From assembly GCA_038087875.1 (NCBI GenBank), contig CM075977.1, positions 91,450,001-91,514,000 on the forward strand: a stretch of DNA of 64,000 nt, in the 5' to 3' direction. This DNA is from Malacoraja senta (taxonomy: Eukaryota). Shown here in pieces: positions 1-49,500 of this stretch. The first letter of the stretch is position 1, and every line of letters begins with the position of its first letter. Position numbers and translations under genes: made by a program. The notes beneath the pieces are model-generated. The model had not been told where the DNA came from. It did no database searches and was given only the letters and a program-made list of their open reading frames with translations.

Positions 1-1602
1 TGTAACATTGGCATTAAAACAAAACACTTCCCATCTCCTGATGAGGAAAAATGTGCTGCTTTTCCGGTGCTATCCCTGCACTCTGCAGTGAGCACGTACA
101 TAGATCAGTCTGGCAACCCGAGCCGCCGGAACGGTCTCTCAGAGTCTGCATGTCTATAAATTGATTTTATCATGCAGAGGATGGTTTCCCGAGTCACGGG
201 GTTGAACCACCAAATGTTTGTGTTTAGGATAACCATATAAGGTCCTATATTATTCCCAACATTTAGTGGGAACCATGGCTGCATAGGCCAGTCAGGCAGT
301 ACGAAATGCCTGAGGCGAGACCTTGCTGGACTTCGTGCAAGACCCGACTGATGAGGCAAAATGGAGGAAAGGCATAAAGAACATTCCTCCTCAGTGTAGC
401 GAGAATACATCTATTTCCACTTTGCCACATATTTTTACAATGGTGATTGAGCCTGGATGTAAACATATTGATATTTGGTCTTCCATCGAACCACAATGTC
501 ATTTAATACTTTGTGATACAACATCCATCCTGTGTTGTCATAGATCTTTACGTGATGACATACCAGTGCCAAATGTGGTTAGGTAAATTATCACAGGTTA
601 TTTAACTTGACTGCACCCATGTGATTAACATATGCCACCACCATAGTGTATCAACTTGGAGTTGAGCATGCAGATTATGCATATTCGCACAATAAACTTT
701 TAACCCATAGAATACACCTAGTGTCTTATAGGTAGTTGATACCATATAACTGAAAAATGGTAACTCATGCAAAGCCCATCCGCCTGCGTAACTAGAGATG
801 GTATTCGTAATTTTTCATCTTTGAGTACTAGCATCAGTTTGTAATATAACTGAAGAGTTACTGAGCAAAAGTTACAGGAGCAATGTTGAATACTGTTCGT
901 CCACCATTGTGACTTTGATAGCTTCAGCTGGTAATAGCATAGGTCTGTTAATAATGACCCATATGGCACTGAAGAAGTTACTCCTTTGCACGTTGTAAGT
1001 TCTGATAATGCAAAGGTCCAAATGCACAGCTGAAAACACAGCCACTATATTGCCAATTACACTTGATGAATAGAGGCTGCTTCATAACAACAAGGTTGTT
1101 ACAGGCTTTTATTAATTCCAATCTCTTGTCACAGTAAATTAATAGAGTTAAAGATAGATCCCAATAATCAATAACTCTAGTTGGTATCAACTTAAACTTA
1201 ACTGGATGGTTGAGAAACCCCAATTTCTCAAATATAGTGTGCGGCCAAAACAGTTAATTTTAGCAAAATACAGCATTTAGAATATCATGTAGTTAGCCAT
1301 AACAAGTGTTTTTGAACTCTAAGCAGCCCAAAGCACCGGTTTTAGTAATTTGATAAATAGCCTGGGAACTGGTTAGCATATTTTGCAACGCTTTAACTGT
1401 TATCATTGCCCCATCCAGCTAAATTTCAAATATCTCCGGTGATCCCTGTGAATGAGAACTGAACAGTATGCATCTTTGAGATCAATGCATGCCATAAAGA
1501 TCCTATGGAAATCAGTTGTTAGACAGTAACGAAGTTTGCTATGCTGAAATGTCTATACTGCACATGCGAGTTAATCAAAGATGAACCGACATCCTGCATC
1601 TT
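1..1602 (-). mobile_element. DIRS (tyrosine-recombinase) retrotransposon, decayed pol: RT, RNase H, DAM-like methylase, start of YR; runs off the window start
   Basis: Minus-strand translation gives DAGCRFIFD...FMACIDLKDAYCSVLIHRDHRRYLKFSWMG (RT, ~1410-1600), GFLNHPVKFKLIPT, YAFPPFCLISRVL and PDWPMQPWFP (DIRS methylase-like motifs); many stops and frameshifts. Confidence 0.88.
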
Positions 1603-1869
1603 ACACAATGATCAGGCCATGCCTGCCATAGTTCCGAGCCTGCCTTGAAAAAACACTCTGGTCATATTTCCGAGCCTATGTCGAAAGGCAATCCTGGCCA
1701 TAATACTGAGTCTGCCTTGAAAGACAACTCTGGCCATCATTCTGTTCCTGCCCATATTTCTGAGCCTGTCTCAAAAGGCAAAGCTGGCCATAATACTGAG
1801 GCTGCTTCAAAAGACAACTCTGGCCACAATTTCACTATCGTATTTGCCTTTCGTTTCCAAGGGGAAGGA
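1603..1869 (+). mobile_element. Inverted 3' tail of Gypsy element 1: 36-bp coding repeats and polypurine tract
   Basis: About five 36-bp units (e.g. GAGTCTGCCTTGAAAGACAACTCTGGCCATCATTCT), in frame in ORF 1645..1878; PPT GGGGAAGGA (1861-1869) directly before the LTR. Confidence 0.75.
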
Positions 1870-2073
1870 TGTAGATGAGATATGCATGTGCCTTTAATAT
1901 AGTGACCTCATCATTACTAACCACTCCCCATATCACAAGTATAATTACAACCTCCCCACCCACATATCACTCTCTAGTTCCTGTGACAGACCACGTACAG
2001 CTAGTGCAATATGTAATGCTCCAGTAAGAATAAAGGTAGTAAAGTAACGATGTGTCGTTAACACTTCTTTACA
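1870..2073 (+). repeat. Gypsy element 1, 3' LTR (204 bp)
   Basis: TGT...ACA ends; reverse complement of 5274-5477 (about 7 differences by eye); preceded by PPT, followed by TSD CCTAC. Confidence 0.95.
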
Positions 2074-2303
2074 CCTACCAGTCCTACTCTCCAATCAAGG
2101 ACATAAATAGAACCCGCATCAGGGGCCTTTGGGCTTACCACAAGACCACCGGTAACCATGAAGGTAGGTGGGTCTGGTTCTTTCCGAAACATGGGGTATG
2201 TGAACCATTTACAAGTTGGTAATATTTACACTTATTTTTTGTACAAATGACAAAGTGAACATGTGATTAGTTTATACTGCACAGTATACAAGGATTCCAA
2301 GCA
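2074..2303 (+). mobile_element. DIRS gag/pol junction segment inside the inversion
   Basis: Starts with TSD CCTAC and continues the DIRS sequence broken at 5478; ends ...LHSIQGF, resembling a DIRS pol N-terminus. Confidence 0.7.
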
Positions 2304-4225
2304 GGAAAATAATGGTCATGCAGCGCAGCAGGCACGACAACCTTGTGACCCTTCACCACCACGCCGTCGTGTAGTACGAGCTCGTCACGGACCAGGAAGT
2401 AGGGCACGGCGCCAGCCGGCAAAGCGGAACGACGGTCGGGCCAGCCCTGCTGGATGATGGCAGAGAGCTGTTGCAGGGCAGGATCATTGGCAGTGTGTTC
2501 AACCAGGGATTTCATCTGCTATGAAGGGACAATATTCACATGGAGCACCAACAGGTCCGACATCTCGTAGGGGTGGCGATCGGTGGATGTCAGCGGGGCG
2601 CGAGACAACGTGTCGGCCACGAACATGTCCTTGCCCTTACGATAAACCACGTCGAAAGTGAAGCGCTGGAGCTGCAGCATCATGCGCTGCAGGTGGGATG
2701 AGGCAACATGGATCGATTTGTTGAGAATGGTGACAAGCGGCTGGTGATCAGTCTCGATGGTGAAAGTGTTGCCCAGGATGTAGTCCTTGAATTTGGAGCA
2801 GGCAAACACCACGGCCAGTAGCTCCTTCTCGATCTGCGCGTAGTGCTGTTCGGCAGCGGTCATGGTGCGGGATGCGAAGGAGACAGGCAGCTGCAGGCCG
2901 TCATGGAGCTGAAGACAAGCGGCACCGAGCCCGAACTGAGAGGCATCGCAGGTGAGGATAATGGGACACTGCAGGTCAAAAAACTTGAGTGTAGGGGTAC
3001 TGATCAGCTTGGATTTAAGGATGTCGAAGGCTTTCTGGTGGTGGGGGAACCAAGCCCAGGACGTGTCCTTCTTTATCAACTCCCTCAGGGGTGCACTGAG
3101 CTCGCTGAGGTCGGGGATGAACTTCCCCAGGTAGTTTACCATGCCCAGGAAGCGTTGCAGGCCGGCCACATCAGTAGGAGAAGACATCCCGGAAATGGCA
3201 GCCGTTTTTTGCGGGTCGGGTTTCAGCCCCGAGGCGGTGAATACATGTCCAACATAGGTGACCTCCGGGACGCGGAATCGGCACTTCTTGGGGTTCAGTT
3301 TCAAGTTGATTTTCCGGGCCCGGTCTAGGACCTGGCGGAGGTTGAAGTCGTGTTCGGCGACATCCTTACCGTAGACCAGGATGTCGTCAACGATGATGGC
3401 GCACGGTAGACCGGTAAACAGCTGCTCCATTGTCCGTTGGAACACCTCGCTGGCAGAGTTGATTCCGAATGGCATTCGGAGGAATCGAAATCTGCCGATG
3501 GGGGTGCCGAAAGTTGTCAAGATGGAGGACTGCTCGTCAAGTGATATCTGCCAGAAGGAGCTCTTGGCATCAAGGACAGAAAAGACTGTTGCCGGACCAA
3601 CCTGTGCAGCGACTTCCTCTACTGTTCTCATAGGGTAGTGCGGGCGTTTAATGGCCAGGTTGAGGTCTTTGGGGTTGATGCAAATGCGTATTTCGCTTTT
3701 GGCCTTTTTCGTGGCAACAACCATGGTGGAGACCCACCTGGTGGGAGCAATGACCGCCTTTAGGATGCCCATTTTTACCATGCTGTGCAGCGTCGATTCT
3801 ACTTTGTCCTTCATGGCGAAGGAGACACAGTGTGGCGCATGGACCACTGGATCGACATTGCGGTCGACTACAATCTTGTAGTTGCAGGGCAGCTTGCCCA
3901 GCTCTTCATCAGAGCGGTCAGGGTATTCAGCCAATGGGTCCATGAGGGCCTGCACCTGGTGGATGTCATGGTGGAAGGAGACCAGGCCCAAGTCCTGGCA
4001 TGCTTGGATGCCCAACAGGGTAATGCATTTTCGATCAAGGAGATAGAAAGTGAGGGGCCGAGAGGACTCCAGTATCTTGCAGTTCAGAGTTACCTTTCCC
4101 ACAGGAGTAAGCACCCCTCCCCCGTAGGCATGCAAAGTTGAGCTGTCAGAAAAAAACTTCTCATTAGTCCTTATCTTGTTGAAGAGGGTTGTTGACATAA
4201 CGTTCGCAACTGCCCCGGTATCAAT
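2304..4225 (-). pseudogene. pol: Gypsy element 1 pol: protease, RT, RNase H, start of integrase region (truncated)
   Basis: IDTGA protease motif; ORF 2519..4198 with LDAKSSFWQI, MPFGI, IVDDIL, TCDAS, YAQIEKELLA, TDHQPL, ADTLSR; stop at 2519-2521; breaks after VVVPAALHDHYF before the integrase core. Confidence 0.93.
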
Positions 4226-5183
4226 CTAGGCAGTGAAGGTCGAGTTGTTCACAGTTACACAAACTGAAGGGTCTGTTATCACAGCAGGTGCGTCCAACAC
4301 AGAAAACAGGCTTATCTCCCCCTGAGAGGAGTCGGATTCAGACACAGACTGTTCGTCGAAATAGCACTGGGAGCTGAGCTCGTTATCAGCTTGTACCAAG
4401 TTGTTTAAAATACACCTCGGAGCAGCAAAAGGCTTCCCACGGGAATGGCAGGCCGCAGCAAAGTGGTTCAGTTTCTTGCAGTTGTTGCAAGTCTTACCCA
4501 AAGCAGGGCATACATTGTATTGATGAGTGGTAAAGTTACAATTGGGGCACCTTTGCCGGGCACGTCCCCCGGGAGCAGTGCCGAACCCGGGGGTAGTGGC
4601 CGGGAAGTGTTCATCCGACGGCTGGTAGTGCTGGCAAAGTTAATATCATGGTCAGCCGGTGACACCGCCGAGGTGACAGCTTCGGCCAAACGACAGGCAT
4701 GCATTGCATCGTTAAAGGTCAGATCGGGCCTGCGCAAAAGTTCAGCCCTCAGCTTCTCGTCGCGGAGACCGTACACCAGAAGGTCCCTAGTAATCTCCTC
4801 AGGGGTCAGCGTGTTAAGGCGGCACCGCCTGGCCAGGTGCCGCAGCGCAGCGACATAGTTCTCGGCATACTCCCCAGGGAGCTGACGCCACGCGAACAGT
4901 TTAAAACGTTCTAAGATGCAGTTTGATGGAATGTCACAAATAGCGGTAAACTTAGCCATACCGGGTCCCGAGCAGATTCACCCGCAGCATAGACGAAGAA
5001 GTCTGACCGAGCCAGGGCCTCGTGACCAGCCAAGTTGAGAAGCAGAGAGGCTCTGAGCTCTGGGCTGGCGGCAGGATGAGCGATTGTGACATAGTGGTCA
5101 AAGTCACGTCTGAAAACATCCCATCGATGGGCAATGTCAGAATCGAAAACGAGCACATCGGGCTTGCGGCAAGAAGTGGCCAT
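4226..5183 (-). pseudogene. gag: Gypsy element 1 gag (frameshifted)
   Basis: Overlapping ORFs with LLLNLAG, ERFKLF..RQ, YVAALRHLARRC, RDLLVYGL and zinc knuckle CNNCKKLNHFAAAC. Confidence 0.88.
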
Positions 5184-5273
5184 GCCGAGGAAATAAGAGG
5201 GGTGTGGAAACAAAAAACTGGGACAAAATTAAATAATAAACCGATAAACGGGAGGCGCCAGGGTAAGACACCA

Positions 5274-5477
5274 TGTAAAGAAGTGTTAACGACACATCGT
5301 TACTTTACTACCTTTATTCTTACTGGAGCATTACAGAAGGCACTAGCTGTACGTGGTCTGTCACAGGAACTAGAGAGCGATATGTGGGTGGGGAGCTTGT
5401 AATTATACTTGTGATATGGGGAGTGGTTAGTAGTGATGAGGTCACTATGTTAAAGGCACATGCATATCTCATCTACA
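5274..5477 (-). repeat. Gypsy element 1, 5' LTR (204 bp)
   Basis: TGT...ACA on minus, followed by TGGTGTC (PBS position); flank GTAGG at 5478-5482 is CCTAC on the element strand. Confidence 0.95.
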
Positions 5478-6873
5478 GTAGGGTACGTGGATTCCATATT
5501 TTTCCTGAGACCGGCTTGGGCCTTGGCCTAAAAGACCTCTGCCCAGCTTGCTGGCTGCCACCAGCTTCAGTGAACCGCTTACTGCCGATGGAGGCATGGG
5601 GTGTGTTGTTGCCAAAACGATGAGGCTGTACTCGTAGTTCGACAGCTTTAGCTCCCTCATGCAGGTCCACCTGTTGAATAGGCTTACCTGAAGAGAAGAT
5701 TCGGCGGCTGTTTTCCCGGGGTTCCATGCCCCTCCAAAGTCACCCCTGATAGCGCTGTTCACTGCCGGCACTTTCAGGAACAATTTACAGGTGCATGGTA
5801 TCTCACAGCCGTCACCTGTTCTTGTTATGACGTGACGTGAGGTTTTGCTGCCAACGGCTGGAACCACTCTTCCTGCAGCACTCCTTCGCTTGCGAGGATG
5901 TCGCAAACTTGGATGTCATGACAGACATATCTGTACCTCACACACGTACTCCAGTATGTTCCACGGACATACTTCCCACTTTGGAGTCAGTTACACACTG
6001 ACACCTCGCACGCCTCTCCATAGCGAGGGTGATAGTAAGCAGCCCTGAAACAGGTGCTGCCGCAGGCCCCCGAGGAGACCAGCGCTGATATGGCCCCTCC
6101 ACGGACCATACCCTTCGTGCCTCATGGTACCGAACTCCGAGTCAGACAGAACTGACCCTGACTGCTCCCCTCCTCAGAGAGGGAGACACTGTGCAGCCCT
6201 GTAAACAGGTGCCGCTGCCACTGCCGCGGGCCCTGAGGAGAACCGCGGTGATATAACTCCCTCCTTGGAGCATACCATTGTGGAGCACCTCTCCATCAGG
6301 TGCTCCATGTGGGCTAGATGTCCGAAGACGTTACCCATTGAAGGAGGGGATCCTCTCCATCAGGAATCCTCCTGGCCCGACTCGTTTGAGTCAACGGCCT
6401 CTTCCCTACGCTCCCCTCCTCAGAGAGGGAGATATAATTTAGTGGCTTACCCTCCAAGCGGGGTTGCCTAGGTGCTACCGGCACCAGACTGAAGCCGCTG
6501 GCTCCACCACCAGCGACTCGAAAGGCAAATTCGACCGCCGCCCGCTACCCTCACTTCCGCGGTCTCCGTAGCGGGTTCCCCGAGGTCATGACCAGGATTC
6601 CCTACGGTCTGTGACTGGGGTTCCCCGCGGTCCATAAAGGTTCCGTCCGGACTTCGCCCCGAAATTCAGCAGGAAAACTCTGTAAGCAGAGACTCCTGCA
6701 AGAGAAAACATAACCTGGGAATAAGTTTAAAACTTACCTTCAGGTTTAAACTTACCGCTGGAAGGAGCAGCGCGCCTGCCAATCAGTCTTTCGCAATGCG
6801 GTAGACATAATGACGCGCATGCAGGCTGACGGGCTTCTATTCACGTAGTCACTCACATGACTCCGAAGTAAAA
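5478..6873 (-). mobile_element. DIRS 5' part: decayed gag-like ORF and left terminus
   Basis: CKLFLKVPAVNSAI resembles DIRS gag; internal direct repeats at ~6030-6430; GC-rich tract ends at a terminus reading TTTTACTTCGGAGTCATGTGAGTGACTACGTGAA on minus. Confidence 0.75.
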
Positions 6874-7094
6874 TTAAAGACATATTTATAACAGTGAAAG
6901 AGTTATGATAGCTATTCTGCAATGTCTTTGTGAACTTGTGGGTGGTGAAGTTATATTGTTTTTATGAACCACTTGTTATAGGGAATGGAAGCAGGGCTGC
7001 AAATGCTCAAAGCTTACTTGCTGCTCACACATCATAGTGGTAAGTAGAAAAGAGATGCAAGACATATAACATTTGAGCATAAACTTGAAGTAAG

Positions 7095-7435
7095 AGTTAA
7101 GAGTGTTTAATTGTTACATGTACCGGCAACAAAAAAAACTTACGTGTAGCAGCTTTGTAGTAAATGCAAAGCACACAGATTTTTTTTTTTTTAATTCAAT
7201 AAATTAATAAACATAATAAGATTGCAAAACTGAAGTCATTAGCACAAGCAAAGAGGGCCCGTTGAAGTTGATAGTTGCGGAGGTCAGTGCTGTGTAGTGT
7301 TCAAGATCCTGATGGTTGTTGGGAAGAATCCTTTCTTGAACCTGGTGGTCACAGTTTTCAGGCTCCTCAACCTTCTTCACGATGGTAGGAGCGAAATGAG
7401 AGTGTGGTGTTGTGAGTCTTTGATGATATTGCCTT
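7095..7435 (-). mobile_element. Rex/Babar LINE 3' fragment (more at ~7950-8045)
   Basis: Minus strand encodes LLPS.RRLRSLKTVTTRFKKGFFPTTIRILN; upstream piece LLNFTRCVMENTMNGCFTACF. Confidence 0.7.
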
Positions 7436-7860
7436 TCTTAAATTTAATCAAAATAAACTTTATTGAAGTTTTTAAAAAAGTACAATACAGGAACTGTGTA
7501 AAAAATGTCTTCCGACATTCTCGGAGGCTGTACATTCATTCAATTCATCGTTACATAGTGTTTACACAAATTACACAATTTTACCTCACATCCTTGCCAC
7601 TCATGTGGCCTCCTGGTGTGAAATCCCTTCCCTTATCTGAGGAGCGTCTTCACCATACCCTACCCCCCCCCCATGTCCAGCAGTGGAAGGGCTGTAGACT
7701 GTTGCCCTCCCACAAAGAGGCTTGCCGTTGGCTGCACCGAGCTTTAGTGCATCCCTCAGCACGCACTCCTGCAGATTGGAGCGGGCCAGTCGGCAACATT
7801 CCCCGACGGACATCTTGCTCTGCAGGGAGGACAACAAAGTTCGGGCAGACTAAAGGGCAC
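7436..7860 (-). mobile_element. Tx1-clade LINE 3' fragment
   Basis: ORF 7601..7837 SVGECCRLARSNLQECVLRDALKLGAANGK..GRATV, followed by a 3' UTR with AATAAA. Confidence 0.7.
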
Positions 7861-8049
7861 CTTTCACCGAGTTGGATCTGCCTTTTTGATCCCTTCGATG
7901 GCAGGGAGGTCAGAATCTGTGATGGACCAGGCAATGTCTACCACTTTCTGTCCTCTCATTCATTCCAGAAAGACCAGGATACTAAAGCATGCTGTGAAAC
8001 AACCATTCATGGTGTTCTCCATCACACACCTGGTGAAGTTCAATAGTGA

Positions 8050-8460
8050 GAGAAGGATACAAGTAGAATTTCCTTCACTCACCTTACCATTCTTATCAAA
8101 TCAGTTCTGGTTTTGTGGTTCATCTTGTAAGATAGCCAAGCGGACTCTTCGCCGATGCCAGCAATGGTGGACTGTAGGGCAGCCCATTGGGTCTGCACTC
8201 TGCAACTTCCATTGTCAGGGAATGCACAGGTTGTGCATGAGGTGCTGCACAAGAAGAGTTACTGTTGTAGGGTCCTTGAGAGCTTTAACATTGATTTCCT
8301 TTCAGTGTTATTTCTGTTGATGCTGATGTTTTGTGGCCATGTTGATGGAGATAACAGAGCGCATTAGACGGTAATCAGTCTTGCAGTCATCGATACCCGT
8401 CATGGAACAAGTAATGTGGTTTCTGTAGTCTGGTGATGAACACTTTTGTTTTGCATGTGA
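8050..8460 (-). mobile_element. RTE-like LINE internal fragment
   Basis: Minus strand: DCKTDYRLMRSVI, INVKALKDP, QWAALQSTI and a decayed NQ.WFD-like motif (post-endonuclease region). Confidence 0.55.
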
Positions 8461-8865: not shown

Positions 8866-9621
8866 TACAGCTCTGCACCTCTTTTGTAATCACACCTCCT
8901 GAAATGCAATTTTATTCACATTGAAATGTTTCAAAGAGGATGAAAGAAAGCATTTGCCCATTAGATCTGTCCTTGCACCACCCCCAACGTCAGTTGCCGT
9001 TTTATTTCAACAGATGTCTTTGCTTTCAGGAAAATAAGTCTGCAGTTCCCAGGCAATTGTAAAACAGCAGAGACTCCAATCCATCCTTCATCTGAGATTA
9101 AATGCCCTTGACCAATCGCCCCTTGTTTAAAACGCCTGACAGCTCTGCCACAAACCCGAGGCACTTAATCACCCCCCTCACACTGCGCTGGTAAACTTTA
9201 AAGCTTTGCCGTCAATCCTATCACATGTCACGCATTTGACACATTTCAAGATGTTTTCTGCTTTCTTGTGACTTTCATTACTGAATAATCGTCAGAAGCA
9301 CCTTCATACGTCAAAAACAAAAATATCACTCGCAGAGGTTGCGTTTCAGTTGGTACTTGATGTCTTTCATTGCTGCATCCTCTGATTGTGAGGGAGTCCT
9401 GCTGCTGATTCAGTTCCCCTTCACCTGTTCAGGGCCTGACGTATTGGATGGAGGCCAGTGGTACCATCTGTGCATCTCGCCTCTTACACACTGATGGTGG
9501 CCACTTTACAAGATGCCTTGTGATGTGGAAAAATCAACATACAGGAAAGCAATGTCGTTATATTACTTTATGCTTTATATGCGGAGATAGGTGATGTGGA
9601 GTTTGATGATATTACATATTG

Positions 9622-10225
9622 TCAAAGATAGACACAAAAAGCTGGAGTAACTCAGCGGGACAGGCAGCATCTCTGGAGAGAAGGAATGGGTGACGTTTCA
9701 GATCGACACCCTTCTTCAAACTATTCAAGGGAAAGGAAAACGAGAGGTATAGACGATGATGTAGAGAGATAAAGGCCAATGAATGAAAGATATGCAAAAA
9801 AGTTATGATGATAAAGGAAACGGGCCATTGTTAGCTGCATGTGTAGGAAATCCAGAGATGCTGCCTGTCCCGCTGAGTTACTCCAGCATTTTGTGTCTAC
9901 CTATTGCTAGCTGTATGTTGGGTGAAAACAAGAAGCTGGTGCAACTTGGGTGGGGGTGGGATGGAGAGAGAGGTAATGCCAGGGTTACTTGAAGTTAGAG
10001 AAATCAATATTCATACCACAGGGCTGCAAGTTGCGCAAGTGAAATATGAGATGCTGTTCCTCCAATTTGCGTTTAGCCTCAATCTGACAACGGAGGAGAC
10101 CTAGAACAGGAAGGTCAGTGTGGGAATGGGAAGGAGAATTTAAAGTGTACAGTATAGCAACAGTATAGCAAGCTGAAGATTAGGTAGGTCCAGGCGGACT
10201 GAGCAAAGGTGTTCAGTGAACTGTG
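9622..10225 (-). mobile_element. Penelope-like element 3' end: GIY-YIG C-terminus and terminal repeat with decayed hammerhead motif
   Basis: Minus strand NSPSHSHTD..LGLL.CQ.EAKRKLEEQHLIF.L..LQP.GMNIDFSNFK; TTGAAGAAGGGTGTCGATCTGAAACGTC at ~9692-9719; small nested copy at ~9840-9900. Confidence 0.85.
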
Positions 10226-16127: not shown

Positions 16128-16269
16128 TTGGTGTGCTCTGAACACAAGCTACAATGGTACCAATGGACAACCATTCCAGGGTAACATATAAGTTAGTGAC
16201 ATCAGCCAAAATTATGTTAAACGCAGAGATTTTTACTTGGACGTTCTGCAAAAGATGACCCATGATCTT

Positions 16270-17672
16270 CACAGGGAATTACAGACCAGTTAGTCTAACA
16301 TCGGTAGTGGGAAAACTGCTAGAGTCAGTTATTAAAGATGGGATAGCAGCACATTTGAAAAATGGTGAAATCATTGGACAAAGTCAGCATGGATTTATGA
16401 AAGGTAAATCATGTCTGACGAATCTAATAGAATTTTTCGAGGATGTAACTAGTAGAGTGGATAAGGGAGAACCAGTGGATGTGTTATATCTGGACTTTCA
16501 GAAGGCTTTCGACAAGGTCCCACATAAGAGATTAATATACAAACTTAAAGCACACAGAATTGGGGGTTCAGTATTGATGTGGATAGAGAACTGGTTGGCA
16601 GACAGGACGGAAAGAGTAGGAGTAAACGGGTCCTTTTCAGAATGGCAGGCAGTGACTAGTGGGATACCGCAAGGCTCAGTGTTGGGACCTCAGCTATTTA
16701 CAATATATATTAATGATTTGGACGAGGGAATTGAATGCAACATCTCCAAGTTTGCAGATGACACGAAGCTGGGGGGCAGTATTAGCTGTGAGGAGGGTGC
16801 TAGGAGGCTGCAAGGTGACTTGGATAGGCTGGGTGAGTGGGCAAATGCATGGCAGATGCAGTATAATGTGGATAAATGTGAGGTTATCCACTTTGGTGGC
16901 AAAAACAGGAAAGTCGACTATTACCTGAATAGTGGCCGATTAGGAGAAGGGGAGATGCAATGAGACCTGGGTGTCATGGTACACCAGTCATTGAAAGTAG
17001 GCATGCAGGTGCAGCAGGCAGTGAAGAAAGCGAATGGTATGTTAGCATTCATAGCAAAAGGATTTGAGTATAGGAGCAGGGAGGTTCTACTGCAGCTGTA
17101 CAGCGTCTTCGTGAGACCACACCTGGAGTATTGCGTACAGTTTTGGTCTCCTAATCTGAGAAAGGACATTCTTACCATAGAGGGAGTACAGAGAAGGTTC
17201 ACCAGACTGATTCCTGGGATGTCAGGACTTTCATATGAAGAAAGACTGGATAGATTCGGCTTGTACTCGCTAGAATTTAGAAGATTGAGGGGGGATCTTA
17301 TAGAAACGTACAAAATTCTTAAGCGGTTGGACAGGCTAGATGCAGGAAGATTGTTCCCGATGTTGGGGAAGTCCAGAACAAGGGGTCACAGTTTAAGGAT
17401 AAAGGGGAAATCTTTTAGGACTAAGATGAGAAAAACATTTTTTACACAGAGAGTGGTGAATCACTGGAATTGCCTACCACAGAATGTAGTTGAGGCCAGT
17501 TCATTGGCTATATTTAAGAGGGAGTTAGATGTGGCCCTTGTGGCTAAAGGGATCAGGGGGTATGGAGAGAAAGCAGGTACAGGATACTGAGTTGATGATC
17601 ATATTGAATGGCGGTGCAGGCTCGAAGGGCCGAATGGCCTACTCCTGCACCTATTTTCTATGTTTCTATGTT
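16270..17672 (+). mobile_element. Young 5'-truncated CR1 LINE, subfamily A
   Basis: ORFs 16262..16963 and 16976..17590 (NYRPVSLTS, DFQKAFDKV, PQGSVLGP, FADD) split by one CGA>TGA stop; (TTCTATGT)n tail. Confidence 0.96.
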
Positions 17673-21578: not shown

Positions 21579-23750
21579 CTAAGAATCTCCGGGAGCCCGG
21601 GATGGCTGACGCCTGCGATGGGGCGGTTGAGCCACATGGACTGGTTCGCTCAGGTCCAAGTGGGCCAGTTTCAAACGAGCCACAGACACAGTTTCACGCC
21701 AGCTTCCCATGTCCAAATCAAACGTAGTAAGCCTGTGCCGCAGCACGTGAAACGGACCTTCATACGGGCGCTGCAAGGGCGACCTGTGGGAGTCACAGTG
21801 AAGAAAGACGTACGGGCAGCCCATCAGTGGCAGTGGCACATGGGAAGGGGCCACTCCATGACGCGATGTTGGGATGGGAGACAGGGCGCCGACCCTCTCC
21901 CGCCAGCAGATCAGCACCGATGACGGGGGTTCCTGGAACCCATCAGCAGCAGGGACAAACTCCCCGGGGACGGTGAGCGGAGCACCATATACCAACTCCC
22001 CAGGGGACGATGACAGATCCTCCTTGGGGGCCGTCCGAATTCCCAACAGGACCCACGGCAAATCGTCCATCCACCCAGGGCCCGTGAGACGAGCCTTCAG
22101 GGCAGCCTTCCGACAGTGGTGGAACCGCTTCACCAACCCATTCGACTGGGGATGGTACGCTGTCGAGTGGTGGAGCTGCGTCCCCAACAGGCGGGCCATG
22201 GCGGACCACAGTTCGGACTTGAACTGGGCGCCCCGGTCGGTCGTGATGTGAAGTGGAACCCCAAAGTGGGCAATCCAAGTTGCCACGAGGGCACGAGTGC
22301 ACGACTGCATTGAAGTGTTCGTGAGCGGAATGGCCTCCGGCCACCGCATAAAACGGTCCACGACCGTAAGCAGGTGCGAAACACCCCAGGATGGAGGCCC
22401 CACGATGTCCACATGTACATGATCGAACCGCCGGCGTGGCACTGCGAAGTCTTGAACGGGCGCCCAGACCGTGTTGATGCACCTTCGATGTCTGGCACGG
22501 GATGCATGTCCAGGCCCAGCGACCGACCTGCTTCCGAAGTCCGTGCCACATAAACCTTGCGGCCACCATAGCGACCGTGGCATAGATGGATGGGTGGGCC
22601 AGCCCATGGATCACCTCAAACAAGCGATGGCGCCAGGCCGCCGGAACGATAGGCCTCGGCTGACCCGTGGATACGCGCAGAGGATGGAACCCAAGGAACC
22701 CAATCGCACGTCCTCAAGCACGAAGCCAGAGATCATGGTGCGGTGTGCCGGCATCTCAGCGTCCGCCCGCCAGCTGGGCCGCCACCAAGTCGGAGTAATC
22801 TGTTCCCGAGGCCGGGTTAAGCACGGCTGTAATTGCCAGACGGGACAAAGTATTCGCCACGAGGTTGCATTTCCCGGCGATGTGCCGGATGTCTGTTGTA
22901 TACTCCGAAATAGCCGCCAGCTGGCGCCGCTGATGGGCGGACCAAGGATCCGAAACCTTCATGAAAGCAAACGTGAGGGGCTTGTGGTCCGTGAAGGCTA
23001 CGAAGGAACGGCCCTCGAGGAAGTACCGGAAGTGCCGCACTGCGAGGTGTAAGGCGAGCAGCTCCCGGTCGAAAGCGCTGTAGCGCTGCTCTGCAACCCT
23101 CAGGTGACGGCTAAAGAAGGCAAGAGGTAGCCGACTGCAGAGTCCGAGGCATCCACGGTAAGGGCTGTGGGGGCGTCGGCCGATGGATGCACAAGCATAG
23201 TCACCCGAGCCAAGGCCTCCTTCGCCCCTTCCAACGCCGCCATGGCGACAGAGTCCTACTGTATCTCCTGTTGTTTGCCGGTCAGCAACTGGAAAAGCGT
23301 CCGCAAAAGTTTGGCAGCCGCCGGAACGAACCGGTGGTAAAATGTGATCATCCCTACGAATTCCCAGAGGCCACGTTCCTTAGCAGGCCGCGGGAACTGA
23401 CGGATTGCCTCAACTCTGTCCGGCAGAGGCACTGCTCCGTGCCGTGTCACCTGATGCCCCAGGAAGTTGATGGTCCGAAGGCCGAATTGGCACTTGCCAG
23501 GGTTAATTACGAGGCCATGGTCACTGAGGCGCTGGAAGAGTAGACGCAGGTGGGCGCAGTGTTCCTCACGCGAGCGACTTGCCACGAGTGAACTGCCATT
23601 CACAGCAGTTAACGGGGGGCCCCTCTTAACAGCACGAATGTCCAGTCCAGATGGGGGCAAAATGCTGACCTCTGCCCCGGTGTCCACCAAGAACCTGAGC
23701 CCCGAGCGCCGGTCGCAGACATACAGGCGATGGATCCTGCCGGCCACCAC
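21579..23750 (-). pseudogene. pol: Gypsy 2 pol remnants: protease, RT C-terminus, RNase H, integrase
   Basis: FLVDTGAE; GLVINPGKCQFG; FTDHKPL; HGLAHP..CIPCQ; VHVDIVGP, TTDRGAQF, YHPQSNG; GPF.V; frameshifted. Confidence 0.92.
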
Positions 23751-23754
23751 CGGC

Positions 23755-24631
23755 GTTTCCCGGAAACGAATATGGCTGGCGGCATTGGCGGGCTGCTGAA
23801 CCCCAGAGTTGGTGCTAAAAACACCACATCCTTCTCCCTGGATCTCCTAGGTCCTGCTCAGCCATCCTCCTCTCCTGTGCCACTTGTCTGGTCTGGGCCT
23901 CTTGTGGGTGTGGGCCTCTTGTGGGTGTGGGCCTCTTGTGGGTGTGGGCCTCTTGTGGGTGTGGGCCTCTTGTGGGTGTGGGCCTCTTGTGGGTGTGGGC
24001 CTCTTGTGGGTGTGGGCCTGGATCGCTGGGCCTTCCAGGGTGCTGAATCGATCTGGTCCAGCGAATCCAGTGACTCCAGGGATTCCAGCGCACCCACTTG
24101 CTGCCGGTCGGACAGCCACAGCTCGTCAGCGCGCGCTGCTAGTCTGATTCGATCCTCGAAGCTCTCCCCCGAGACCTGCCGGCGGATGTCGCGCGGCAAC
24201 TGCTGCAGGTAAGTAAATTCAAACAGCGGGCAGAGCTGGTGGTCGCCCATGAGCGTGAGCATCTCGCTCATGAGAGCCGAGGGTTTCCGGTCGCCGAGCC
24301 CACACATGTTGAGGACCCGACATGCACGCTCCATTTGGCTCGGCCCGTAGAGCCGGGGCAGCAGCTCCTTGAGGCCTGTGTATTTTCCTGCTGCCAGCGG
24401 ATTATCGAGGTAAGGTACGACCCGACCGGCCGTTTCCTGATCAAGAGAGCTTACCACATAGTGGTAACGGGTCTTGTCGGCCGTTACGCCGCGGATGTAG
24501 AATTGGGACTCGGCCTGTCGGAACCAAACCCCCGGCTGTGAAGTCCAAAATGTAGGCAGCTTCAGGGAGATCGCGTTGAGTTCGGCCTTGTGGGCCTCGT
24601 AGGGCAGCGACAGAATGCATTTTTTCCCCAA
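23755..24631 (-). pseudogene. gag: Gypsy 2 gag with a 17-bp minisatellite and a GGGAAAC slippery heptamer
   Basis: KLPTFW...WFRQAESQF, LGDRKPSALMSEM; knuckle CF*HQLWGSAARQC in another frame; GGGAAAC on minus at 23755-23761. Confidence 0.88.
23898..24016 (+). repeat. Perfect minisatellite, 7 x CCTCTTGTGGGTGTGGG
   Basis: Counted directly. Confidence 0.95.
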
Positions 24632-30830: not shown

Positions 30831-31062
30831 NNNNNNNNNNNNNNNNNNNNNNNNNNNNNNNNNNNNNNNNNNNNNNNNNNNNNNNNNNNNNNNNNNNNNN
30901 NNNNNNNNNNNNNNNNNNNNNNNNNNNNNNNNNNNNNNNNNNNNNNNNNNNNNNNNNNNNNNNNNNNNNNNNNNNNNNNNNNNNNNNNNNNNNNNNNNNN
31001 NNNNNNNNNNNNNNNNNNNNNNNNNNNNNNNNNNNNNNNNNNNNNNNNNNNNNNNNNNNNNN
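30831..31062. other. Assembly gap, 232 N
   Basis: N run. Confidence 1.
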
Positions 31063-34187: not shown

Positions 34188-35730
34188 TATGGAGTACTTA
34201 AGGAAGTAGCTCCAGAAATAGTGGATGCATTAGTGATAATTTTTCAAAACTCTTTAGATTCTGGAGTAGTTCCTGAGGATTGGAGGGTAGCAAACGTAAC
34301 CCCACTTTTTAAGAAGGGAGGGAGAGAGAAAATGGGGAATTACAGACCAGTTAGTCTAACATCGGTAGTGGGGAAACTGCTAGAGTCAGTTATTAAAGAT
34401 GGGATAGCAGCACATTTGGAAAGTGGTGAAATCATTGGACAAAGTCAGCATGGATTTACGAAAGGTAAATCGTGTCTGACGAATCTTATAGAATTTTTCG
34501 AGGATGTAACTAGTAGAGTGGATAGGGGAGAACCAGTGGATGTGTTGTATCTGGACTTTCAGAAGGCTTTCGACAAGGTACCACATAAGAGATTAGGATA
34601 CAAACTTAAATCACACGGTATTGGGGGTTCAGTATTGATGTGGATAGAGTACTGGCTGGCAAACAGGAAGCAAAGAGTAGGAGTAAATGGGTCCTTTTCA
34701 CAATGGCAGGCAGTGACTAGTGGGGTACCGCAAGGCTCAGTGCTGGGAGCCCAGCTATTTACAATTTATATTAATGATCTGGACGAGGGAATTGAAAGCA
34801 ACATCTCCAAGTTTGCGGATGACACTAAGCTGGGGGGCAGTGTTAGCTGTGAGGAGGATGCTAGGAGACTGCAAGGTGACTTGGATAGGCTGGGTGAGTG
34901 GTCAAATGTTTGGCAGATGCAGTATAATGTGGATAAATGTGAGGTTATCCACTTTGGTGGCAAAAACGGGAAGGCAGACTATTATCTAAATGGTGGCCGA
35001 TTAGGAAATGGGGAGATGCAGCGAGACCTGGGTGTCATGGTACACCAGTCATTGCAGGTGCAGCAGGCAGTGAAGAAAGCGAATGGTATGTTGGCTTTCA
35101 TAGCAAGAGGATTTGAGTATAGGAGCAGGGAGGTTCTACTGCAGTTGTACAGGGTCTTGGTGAGACCACACCTGGAGTATTGCGTACAGTTTTGGTCTCC
35201 AAATCTGAGGAAGGACATTATAGCCATAGAGGGAGTGCAGAGAAGGTTCACCAGACTGATTCCTGGGATGTATGGACTTTCATATGAAGAAAGACTGGAT
35301 AGACTTGCCTTATACTCGCTAGAATTTAGGAGATTGAGAGGGGATCTTATAGAAACGTACAAAATTCTTATGGGGTTGGACAGGCTAGATGCAGGAAGAT
35401 TGTTCCCGATGTTGGGGAAGTCCAGGACAAGGGGTCATAGCTTAAGGATAAGGGGGAAATCCTTTAAGACCGAGATGAGGAAAAACTTTTTCACACAGAG
35501 AGTGGTGAATCTCTGGAACTCTCTGCCACAGAGGGTAGTTGAGGCCAGTTCATTGGCTATATTTAAGAGGGAGTTAGATGTGGCCCTTGTGGCTAAAGGG
35601 ATCAGGGGGTATGGAGAGAAGGCAGGTACGGGATACTGAGTTGGATGATCAGCCATGATCATATTGAATGGCGGTGCAGGCTCGAAGGGCCGAATGGCCT
35701 ACTCCTGCACCTATTTTCTATGTATCTATG
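34188..35730 (+). mobile_element. Young CR1 subfamily A with uninterrupted 472-codon RT ORF (5'-truncated)
   Basis: ORF 34221..35639 with full RT (FADD); 12-bp in-frame deletion (KVGM) relative to sibling copies. Confidence 0.97.
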
Positions 35731-47970: not shown

Positions 47971-48524
47971 ATTTTTCATCACCATGTCCACATCCTTCTG
48001 AAAGATACATCTGCCAATGCTCAAAGCTTTTCATTGCATGTATCCAACTGTTTTCATCTATAGTAAAAACAGAAAGTGTTGGAAGCATTCAGCAGGTGGG
48101 GCAGTTGTAAAACCAACTTGTTTTCTTAGTTTCTCAGATGACAATATAGCTAACATTGTTTTGATGAAGGATTGTTGAATTCCATTTTCCTTTCCACAAA
48201 TGCTACCTGATCTTCTGAGTGCTTCCAACATTTTCTGGATTTAATTGAGTTTTCCTTCATTTTCAGTGATTCTGATTTGCAGCTTGCAATGTAGACAGTC
48301 CTGTCCAGTTACCATTTTATTCTGCATCCCAGCTGTAGCTGGCACATGCACCAAACTTTCACTTGGACTGTCCCACAGTAGTTTTAAACCTGTTGACACA
48401 CCATCTGTCAAAACCTCAAAGCTACTCTGTGCTCACCCCAAATAGGGAGGAGGGAACGAGGAGGCACATGTTAACTTTAACGTTAATCAGCAGAGAGCGG
48501 GGGATGAGAAAGTGGGGTGTATCC

Positions 48525-49500
48525 ATATTTACACTATATATTAATGATTTGGACGAGAGAATTGAATGCAACATCTCCAAGTTTGCGGATGACACGAAGC
48601 TGGGGGGCAGTGTTAGCTGTGAGGAGGATGTTAGGAGGCTGCAAGGTGACTTGGATAGGTTGGGTGAGTGGGCAAATGCATGGCAGATGCAGTATAAAGT
48701 GGATAAATGTGAGGTTATCCACTTTGGTGGCAAGAACAGGAAAGTAGATTATTATCTGAATGGTGGCCGATTAGGAAAAGGGGAGATGCAACGAGACCTG
48801 GGTGTCATGGTACACCAGTCATTGAAAGTAGGCATGCAGGTGCAGCAGGCAGTGAAGAAAGCGAATGGTATGTTAGCATTCATAGCAAAAGGATTTGAGT
48901 ATAGGAGCAGGGAGGTTCTACTGCAGTTGTACAGGGCCTTGGTGAGACCACACCTGGAGTATTGTGTACAGTTTTGGTCCCCTAATCTGAGGAAAGACAT
49001 TCTTGCCATAGAGGGAGTACAGAGAAGGTTCACCAGACTGATTCCTGGGATGTCAGGACTTTCATATGAAGAAAGACTGGATAGACTCGGCTTGTATTCG
49101 CTAGAATTTAGAAGATTGAGGGGGGATCTTATAGAAACTTACAAAATTCTTAAGGGGTTGGACAGGCTAGATGCAGGAAGATTGTTCCCGATCTTGGGGA
49201 AGTCCAGAACAAGGGGTCACAGTTTAAGGATAAGGGGGAAGTCTTTTAGGACCGAGGAGACCATTTTTTTTCACACAGAGAGTGGTGAATCTGTGGAATT
49301 CTCTGCCACAGAAGGTAGTTGAGGCCAGTTCATTGGCTATATTTAAGAGGGAGTTAGATGTGGCCCTTGTGGCTAAAGGGATCAGGGGGTATGGAGAGAA
49401 GGCAGGTACAGGATACTGAGTTGGATGATCAGCCATGATCATATTGAATGGCGGTGCAGGCTCAAAGGGCCGAATGGCCTACTCCTGCACCTATTTTCTA
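48525..49500 (+). mobile_element. Young CR1 subfamily A (5'-truncated, frameshift near 49255)
   Basis: FTLYINDL..FADD..LVRPHLEYC; near-identical to the 16270 copy. Confidence 0.96.

Follow-up and report, generated by a model that had tools for sequence, protein, structure and literature searches.

How does a Ty3/Gypsy retrotransposon, in which the long terminal repeats (LTRs) are expected to be direct, come to carry them inverted? The question arises near the start of a 64,000-nucleotide window (the whole stretch of DNA analysed) of Malacoraja senta, contig CM075977.1, positions 91,450,001 to 91,514,000 of the forward strand. Here, a Ty3/Gypsy copy on the minus strand is nested in an abundant interspersed repeat, referred to below as the host repeat, and one of its LTRs points the wrong way. 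The answer judged likely has two parts: the element inserted normally; and a 474-bp segment was later inverted in place by a host event. The evidence that carries this comes from the position of the target-site duplication and from public sequence contigs in which the host repeat is uninterrupted.

Inverted LTRs and the target-site duplication

The ends of the element comprise the following features.

1870 to 2073, plus strand: 3' LTR with TGTAG...TTACA ends, inverted relative to the element body; one arm of a 204-nt inverted repeat
5274 to 5477, minus strand: 5' LTR; the second arm of the 204-nt inverted repeat
2074 to 2078, plus strand: copy of the target-site duplication, CCTAC, read from the sequence and found as the shared overlap in contigs of the uninterrupted site
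5478 to 5482, minus strand: copy of the target-site duplication, CCTAC, read from the sequence and found as the overlap in contigs of the uninterrupted site

The two arms are 204 nt each, are 97% complementary with 7 mismatches, and lie 3,200 nt apart. This likeness is far above chance, and the pair is the single long inverted repeat within the first 12 kb of the window; when the first 8 kb were compared with the whole 64-kb window, no further copy of it was returned. The polarity from TGTAG to TTACA places the left arm on the plus strand and the right arm on the minus strand (5477-5274). A purine run, AAGGGGAAGGA (1859-1869), abuts the left arm upstream, and CCTAC (2074-2078) directly follows that arm. 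On the minus strand, CCTAC (5482-5478) stands before the right arm, and TGGTGTCTTACC, which begins with TGG, comes after it. CCTAC therefore adjoins U3 in the 5' LTR and U5 in the 3' LTR.

An initial annotation, made from the letters of the window, had described the LTRs as inverted rather than direct, with CCTAC on the element strand at both and a polypurine tract before the plus-strand LTR; all of this can be read directly at the coordinates above. It had also placed a primer-binding site behind the minus-strand LTR. The TGG of such a site is present, and no transfer RNA (tRNA) matching TGGTGTCTTACC was identified, the window having no tRNA gene for comparison.

Of the features expected of a Ty3/Gypsy element, a short target-site duplication and a polypurine tract abutting an LTR are found, and TGG follows the 5' LTR at the place where a primer-binding site would begin. 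The direct LTR orientation expected of the group is not found, as the TG...CA LTRs are inverted, and the direct orientation of both would have been the ancestral state. Because the LTRs differ by 3.4%, the insertion is not recent. The 204-nt inverted arms give the locus only the potential to form a hairpin, and no function.

Seen from outside, the locus has the outline of a terminal-inverted-repeat transposon. This candidate was rejected because there is no duplication at the outer ends: the letters immediately outside the arms are AAGGA (1865-1869) and GTAGG (5478-5482).

The uninterrupted host-repeat site

If the element inserted normally, copies of the host repeat that lack it should preserve the original arrangement of the two flanks. 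Logan contigs of four public runs, from three organisms, were compared with positions 900-6400; runs X23 and X24 are from the likely source organism, and X1 and X5 are from one other organism each. Depth is very high in every bin of 900-6400 in all four runs, so the whole neighbourhood is repeat, and the host repeat is abundant in all three organisms. Its two parts beside the element are as follows.

5483 to 6400: part of the host repeat lying 5' of the insertion, with high copy number in four runs and continuing to at least ~6850 by composition
2079 to 2305, plus strand: host-repeat flank of 227 bp, in the original order directly behind the 3' LTR; opposite-strand joint to 5478 in four runs

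An uninterrupted copy is expected to read as the reverse complement of 5483 onward, then a single CCTAC, and then 2079 onward. Consistent with this expectation, each of the four runs has contigs in which 2079 meets 5478 on the other strand, 3-5 letters being common to both sides; the overlap letters are CCTAC, present once, as in uninterrupted copies of the host repeat. The joint might instead have had an LTR-CCTAC-LTR geometry; this was excluded, since that geometry predicts no shared letters. Because both flanks and CCTAC are contiguous in uninterrupted copies, the duplication is real and the insertion was normal. Because 2079 and 5478 are joined on opposite strands, the flank 2079-2305 is inverted and would have been flipped after the insertion. 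The ancestral 5478/2079 adjacency that an inversion flanked by deletion calls for is thereby recovered in four runs. The contigs also carry internal variants at 2098-2151, 2180-2270 and 2190-2261, from which it follows that the 2079 flank is multi-copy to at least 2270.

Two independent insertions, one for each LTR, were rejected, as uninterrupted copies carry both flanks and the 5 nt of the duplication as one continuous stretch. A fold-back complementary DNA (cDNA) integrated as such was likewise rejected, given the chromosomal flank within the inverted block.

A broader version of the latter idea is that the copy was born inverted, an aberrant or broken cDNA having been integrated and repaired into its present form in a single step. 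One X23 contig lends this some encouragement, as in it an LTR is preceded, about 38 nt upstream, by a piece of LTR in inverted orientation. Three observations oppose it: no duplication lies outside the arms, where AAGGA faces GTAGG; CCTAC abuts U3 in one LTR and U5 in the other, the pattern left by normal concerted integration; and the inverted block contains 227 bp of chromosomal flank, which a cDNA cannot supply. A birth in the inverted state is accordingly regarded as extremely improbable.

The X23 contig is of interest in its own right. It follows the plus strand to 5464 (the reverse LTR without its first 13 nt), has 17 other letters, and then runs from 1849 onward through the polypurine tract and the start of the LTR. 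It follows that in another copy two LTR pieces stand back to back, with a junction ~35-38 nt upstream of an LTR, a position close to the breakpoint of the present locus.

Identity of the host repeat

The initial annotation had assigned the host repeat to the DIRS group, with the flank on the plus strand and the remainder of the host on the minus strand. The strand relationship is borne out by the contigs of the four runs, in which 2079-2305 is inverted relative to 5483 onward. The DIRS identity finds no support. The combination by which such an element would be recognised (a tyrosine recombinase together with DIRS-type reverse transcriptase (RT), RNase H and methyltransferase open reading frames) is not found in the host repeat. 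Among the 18 flanking open reading frames (ORFs) of 1-1831 or 5483-8320 there is no Pfam domain, RT or recombinase. A word-based protein search found no relatives of the 145-aa ORF at 5472-5906, which spans the insertion site, and a protein Atlas search with the host repeat returned no usable match. tblastn with the Gypsy RT detected no second RT within 13 kb, and self-comparison at standard and relaxed settings found no further copy of the Gypsy family or the host repeat in the 64-kb window.

Some contigs also step backwards within the host repeat. Two such joints, 6183 to 6035 and 6397 to 6164, point to the presence within it of a direct repeat of roughly 150-235 bp. A further joint of this kind leads from 6395 back to 1547 across 18 intervening letters and suggests tandem or circularly permuted host-repeat copies, or a circle junction.

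The Gypsy internal region and the missing integrase

The second irregularity of the element is that its polyprotein is incomplete. The internal region is organised as follows.

2306 to 5273, minus strand: Gypsy internal region, from Pfam, tblastn and the ORF list
5273 to 5262, minus strand: primer-binding-site-like TGGTGTCTTACC, starting TGG after the 5' LTR
about 5213 to 4471, minus strand: gag pieces, split over frames
near 4215, minus strand: protease DTG motif
3242 to 3697, minus strand: RVT_1 (RT) by Pfam, within the 559-aa ORF 2519-4198
2660 to 3052, minus strand: RT_RNaseH and RT_RNaseH_2 by Pfam, within the same 559-aa ORF
at 2306, minus strand: tether ending ...VVVPAALHDHYF, the end of pol homology
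1832 to 1869, plus strand: final 38 nt of the Gypsy interior with the polypurine tract AAGGGGAAGGA, on the strand opposite to the rest of the element

The nearest public proteins are fish and invertebrate Gypsy polyproteins, most of which carry the integrase domains H2C2 and rve. Among the best protein matches, identity to the pol ORF is 57-66% where they cover most of it and 79% where they cover half; for P0001-P0010 it is 57-65% over ~500 residues, and for P0063 it is 79% over 279 residues. When seven relatives were compared with the window by tblastn, homology was collinear from gag (5183) down to 2306. For the five that bear an integrase, homology ends at 2306 (...VVVPAALHDHYF), right before the H2C2 motif xIIHRGHPG, and these relatives continue for 374-382 more residues (H2C2, rve and tail) past this point. 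No integrase homology was found anywhere near the locus by tblastn with Gypsy relatives; relative to them, ~1.1 kb of integrase coding sequence is missing. The earlier statement that Gypsy pol stops before the integrase therefore stands. Removal of the integrase by the inversion, as also proposed there, does not follow, as the integrase was possibly already absent beforehand.

The ORF list additionally shows a gag broken across frames and two in-frame stops, one at 4226-4228 and the other at 2519-2521. With stops, a split gag and no integrase, this Gypsy copy is dead.

An X5 contig departs from the window at 2331 and continues as the translation ...ESLRVAYFQS. Judged by this translation, it comes from a related subfamily whose pol extends past the truncation point of the present copy.

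Edges of the inverted block

On the right, the inverted block stops where the homology to pol stops. The left edge depends on how a tandem array that precedes the last 38 nt of the element is assigned.

1612 to 1831, plus strand: 36-nt tandem array of about 6 units (Tandem Repeats Finder), most likely host repeat beyond the inversion and not a Gypsy 3' tail

The initial annotation had proposed a block of ~700 bp beginning at ~1603, with deletions at both of its ends. Several observations place the edge elsewhere. Tandem Repeats Finder reports periods of 36 and 90 over 1625-1830, so that the array ends at 1830. A second opposite-strand joint, 1831/2305, occurs in X1 (2 contigs) and X5 (1 contig); one of its ends is the end of the array, and the other is the independently determined end of pol homology. 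Depths at this joint are 231 (X1) and 35 (X5), as compared to 143 and 39 for the 2079/5478 joint. Close depths fit an origin of both joints in the host repeat, because the two junctions would then be 227 nt apart in the same repeat. Homology to the C-terminus of pol begins only at about 1832-1839. Here, the frame from 1833 reads HYRICLSFPRGRM*, with R-x-C-x3-P-[KR] 11 residues before the stop, which can be compared with R[VIL]C.PNPKYxx* in the relatives; this match in the last 38 nt is weak by a shuffle test (39/500) and serves as supporting evidence only. No frame of the array contains the conserved YVTRAG motif that lies upstream of R-I-C.

Taken together, these data place the left edge of the inverted block probably at 1831|1832 and not at ~1603. 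The block is then most likely 1832-2305, 474 bp. Besides the 3' LTR and one CCTAC, it would hold 227 bp of host repeat and the 38 nt at the end of pol in which the polypurine tract lies. With a block of this extent, the array would belong to the host repeat, and little or no host DNA would have been lost. Hence, of the initial proposal, the local inversion after insertion, turning over the 3' LTR and its flank, is retained on the strength of the contiguous CCTAC and flanks in uninterrupted copies. The ~700-bp block is replaced by a shorter one, and in place of deletions at both ends there is loss only on the Gypsy side, of about 1.1 kb.

The longer block (~1603-2303) would require the array to be a low-complexity C-terminal tail of Gypsy pol, with DNA lost at both ends. 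Relatives do show low-complexity tails ahead of their C-terminal motif, and the array is open in a plus frame from 1612 through to the LTR. However, the array is open on the minus strand too, so an open frame carries no weight; the array frame also differs from the frame that matches the C-terminus of pol, and YVTRAG is missing upstream of R-I-C in all frames. The likeness of the array peptide to the tails of relatives is no better than that of shuffles, and a multi-copy joint falls exactly at the array end. Same-strand joints from 1737 to 5540 also link the array to the host repeat, weakly, as the matching sides are just 19-23 nt. This longer block is consequently considered quite improbable.

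The placement of the left edge at 1831|1832 has evidence against it as well. The 1831/2305 joint has zero shared letters, and host continuity with identical letters predicts two (AA). The discrepancy may be reconcilable by a few intervening letters, as inserts of up to 40 letters go unflagged in the joint table, which the 1737-to-5540 row illustrates. The contigs that carry this joint may alternatively be Gypsy-only, with pol 2305 joined to 1831, and the joint was not seen in the X23 and X24 contigs of the likely source organism. Nor does the array detectably continue in the reverse complement of 2305 downward, where the alignment score of 13, against a shuffle mean of 11.4, is not significant. 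Finally, the junctions 1831|1832 and 2305|2306 are known from the assembly alone.

The Gypsy-only geometry leads to a different account of the missing integrase. In this account, integrase loss is a family trait: a non-autonomous parent already lacked it, its pol passing at 2305 straight into the last 38 nt, and this copy then underwent a clean two-break inversion. Zero shared letters at 1831/2305 is the exact prediction of such a geometry (pol 2305, then 1831 upward), the pol 2305-1831 junction would keep the frame with the C-terminal frame of pol, and the joint is multi-copy in two other organisms. Against this, no contig of the likely source organism shows the joint, and the depth of the joint follows that of the host-repeat joint and not the Gypsy bins. 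An inversion break would also have to fall exactly on the deletion junction of the subfamily, roughly a 1-in-1000 coincidence, and for this reason the account is rated lower and is held to be unlikely.

That the two junctions are known from the assembly, and that all of 900-6400 is high-copy repeat and hard for assemblers, raises the question of whether the LTRs are truly direct and the 474-bp block was simply misoriented. There is no assembly gap nearby, the sole run of N in the window being 30831-31062. Both junctions are clean, a long read would greatly exceed the block in length, and a balanced 474-bp flip is an unlikely long-read artefact. Moreover, restoring the block to the other orientation would still leave the integrase missing. 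An assembly artefact is therefore thought very unlikely.

Proposed history of the locus

The anatomy of the copy, the real duplication, the inverted flank and the point of truncation are shown directly. For the inversion of 1832-2305, where exactly the left break fell, in what sequence the events came and how the DNA was repaired are inferred as follows. A Ty3/Gypsy element would have inserted normally, on the minus strand, into the abundant interspersed repeat, duplicating CCTAC. Later, a host breakage-and-repair event or a replication error would have turned over 1832-2305 in place. One possibility would be three breaks, with the 474-bp piece rejoined in flipped orientation and the integrase piece lost; another would be two template switches during replication. 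The ~1.1 kb of integrase between ...HYF (2306) and the 38 nt could have been lost in the same event or could already have been missing in the parent. The outcome would be a dead element with LTRs facing each other.

Integrase did not make the junctions 1831|1832 and 2305|2306, because neither is at an LTR end. A host event is the simplest account of them. A comparison of the array end, CCACAATT, with the pol end on the same strand, CCATTATT, gives a match at 6/8 positions. This was noticed post hoc and is at best a weak hint of microhomology at the junctions. Structural variants that combine an inversion with a flanking deletion have been catalogued as a class in human genomes (PMC5338099).

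A more elaborate mechanism would make the breakpoints non-random. The replication intermediates of the family would be interrupted again and again at the same places, namely at the module formed by the 38 nt and the 3' LTR and at the pol end, 2305. The source of both the integrase-less junction and the present locus would then be cDNAs that had broken or switched template; integrase would have tethered their pieces to the target, and host repair would have joined them, sometimes misoriented. This mechanism is considered highly doubtful. If the same two breakpoints were to recur genome-wide, they would be evidence for a replication-linked origin and of moderate interest to the retroelement field.

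The locus is best described as ordinary structural decay of a nested retrotransposon, and it is not a new kind of mobile element. Its biological weight is small, and it provides a clear example of nested-repeat decay. Two points have wider use: a retrotransposon can come to resemble a terminal-inverted-repeat element, which may mislead automatic annotation; and the position of the target-site duplication tells an inversion after insertion from fold-back copies that were born inverted.

Other features of the window

A second, unrelated LTR retroelement lies at 21582-24631 on the minus strand, with DUF7041 (gag-like), RVT_1, Integrase_H2C2 and rve; it is 24-30% identical to the Gypsy relatives. 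ORFs with an RT domain only are present at 16262-16960, 34221-35636 and 48363-49319, all on the plus strand, and are probably LINE-type or Penelope-type elements. A 65-nt inverted repeat (9613-9677 and 9851-9915) is 88% complementary, with 173 nt between its arms.

Comparison with known systems

The element most closely resembles the Ty3/Gypsy (Metaviridae) elements of fish and aquatic animals, annotated as 'K02A2.6-like' or 'Gypsy retrotransposon integrase-like'. It shares with them the order gag, protease, RT and RNase H, as well as TG...CA LTRs, a 5-bp duplication and a polypurine tract. In contrast to these relatives, this copy lacks H2C2 and rve, has an inverted 3' LTR and contains in-frame stops.

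As a rearrangement, the locus resembles the delINV and INVdel variants of human genomes: a short inverted segment, two novel junctions and one-sided loss (PMC5338099), which here may or may not belong to the same event. Here, however, the rearrangement lies inside nested repeats and in a fish genome; it may have come about by end joining or by template switching.

In outline, the locus is also like the terminal-inverted-repeat DNA transposons and foldback elements, with 204-nt terminal inverted repeats around a 3.2-kb body. Unlike a terminal-inverted-repeat transposon, it has no duplication at its outer ends and no transposase, and its arms are LTRs with a polypurine tract and a primer-binding-site-like sequence as neighbours. 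The likeness to such a transposon is accidental.

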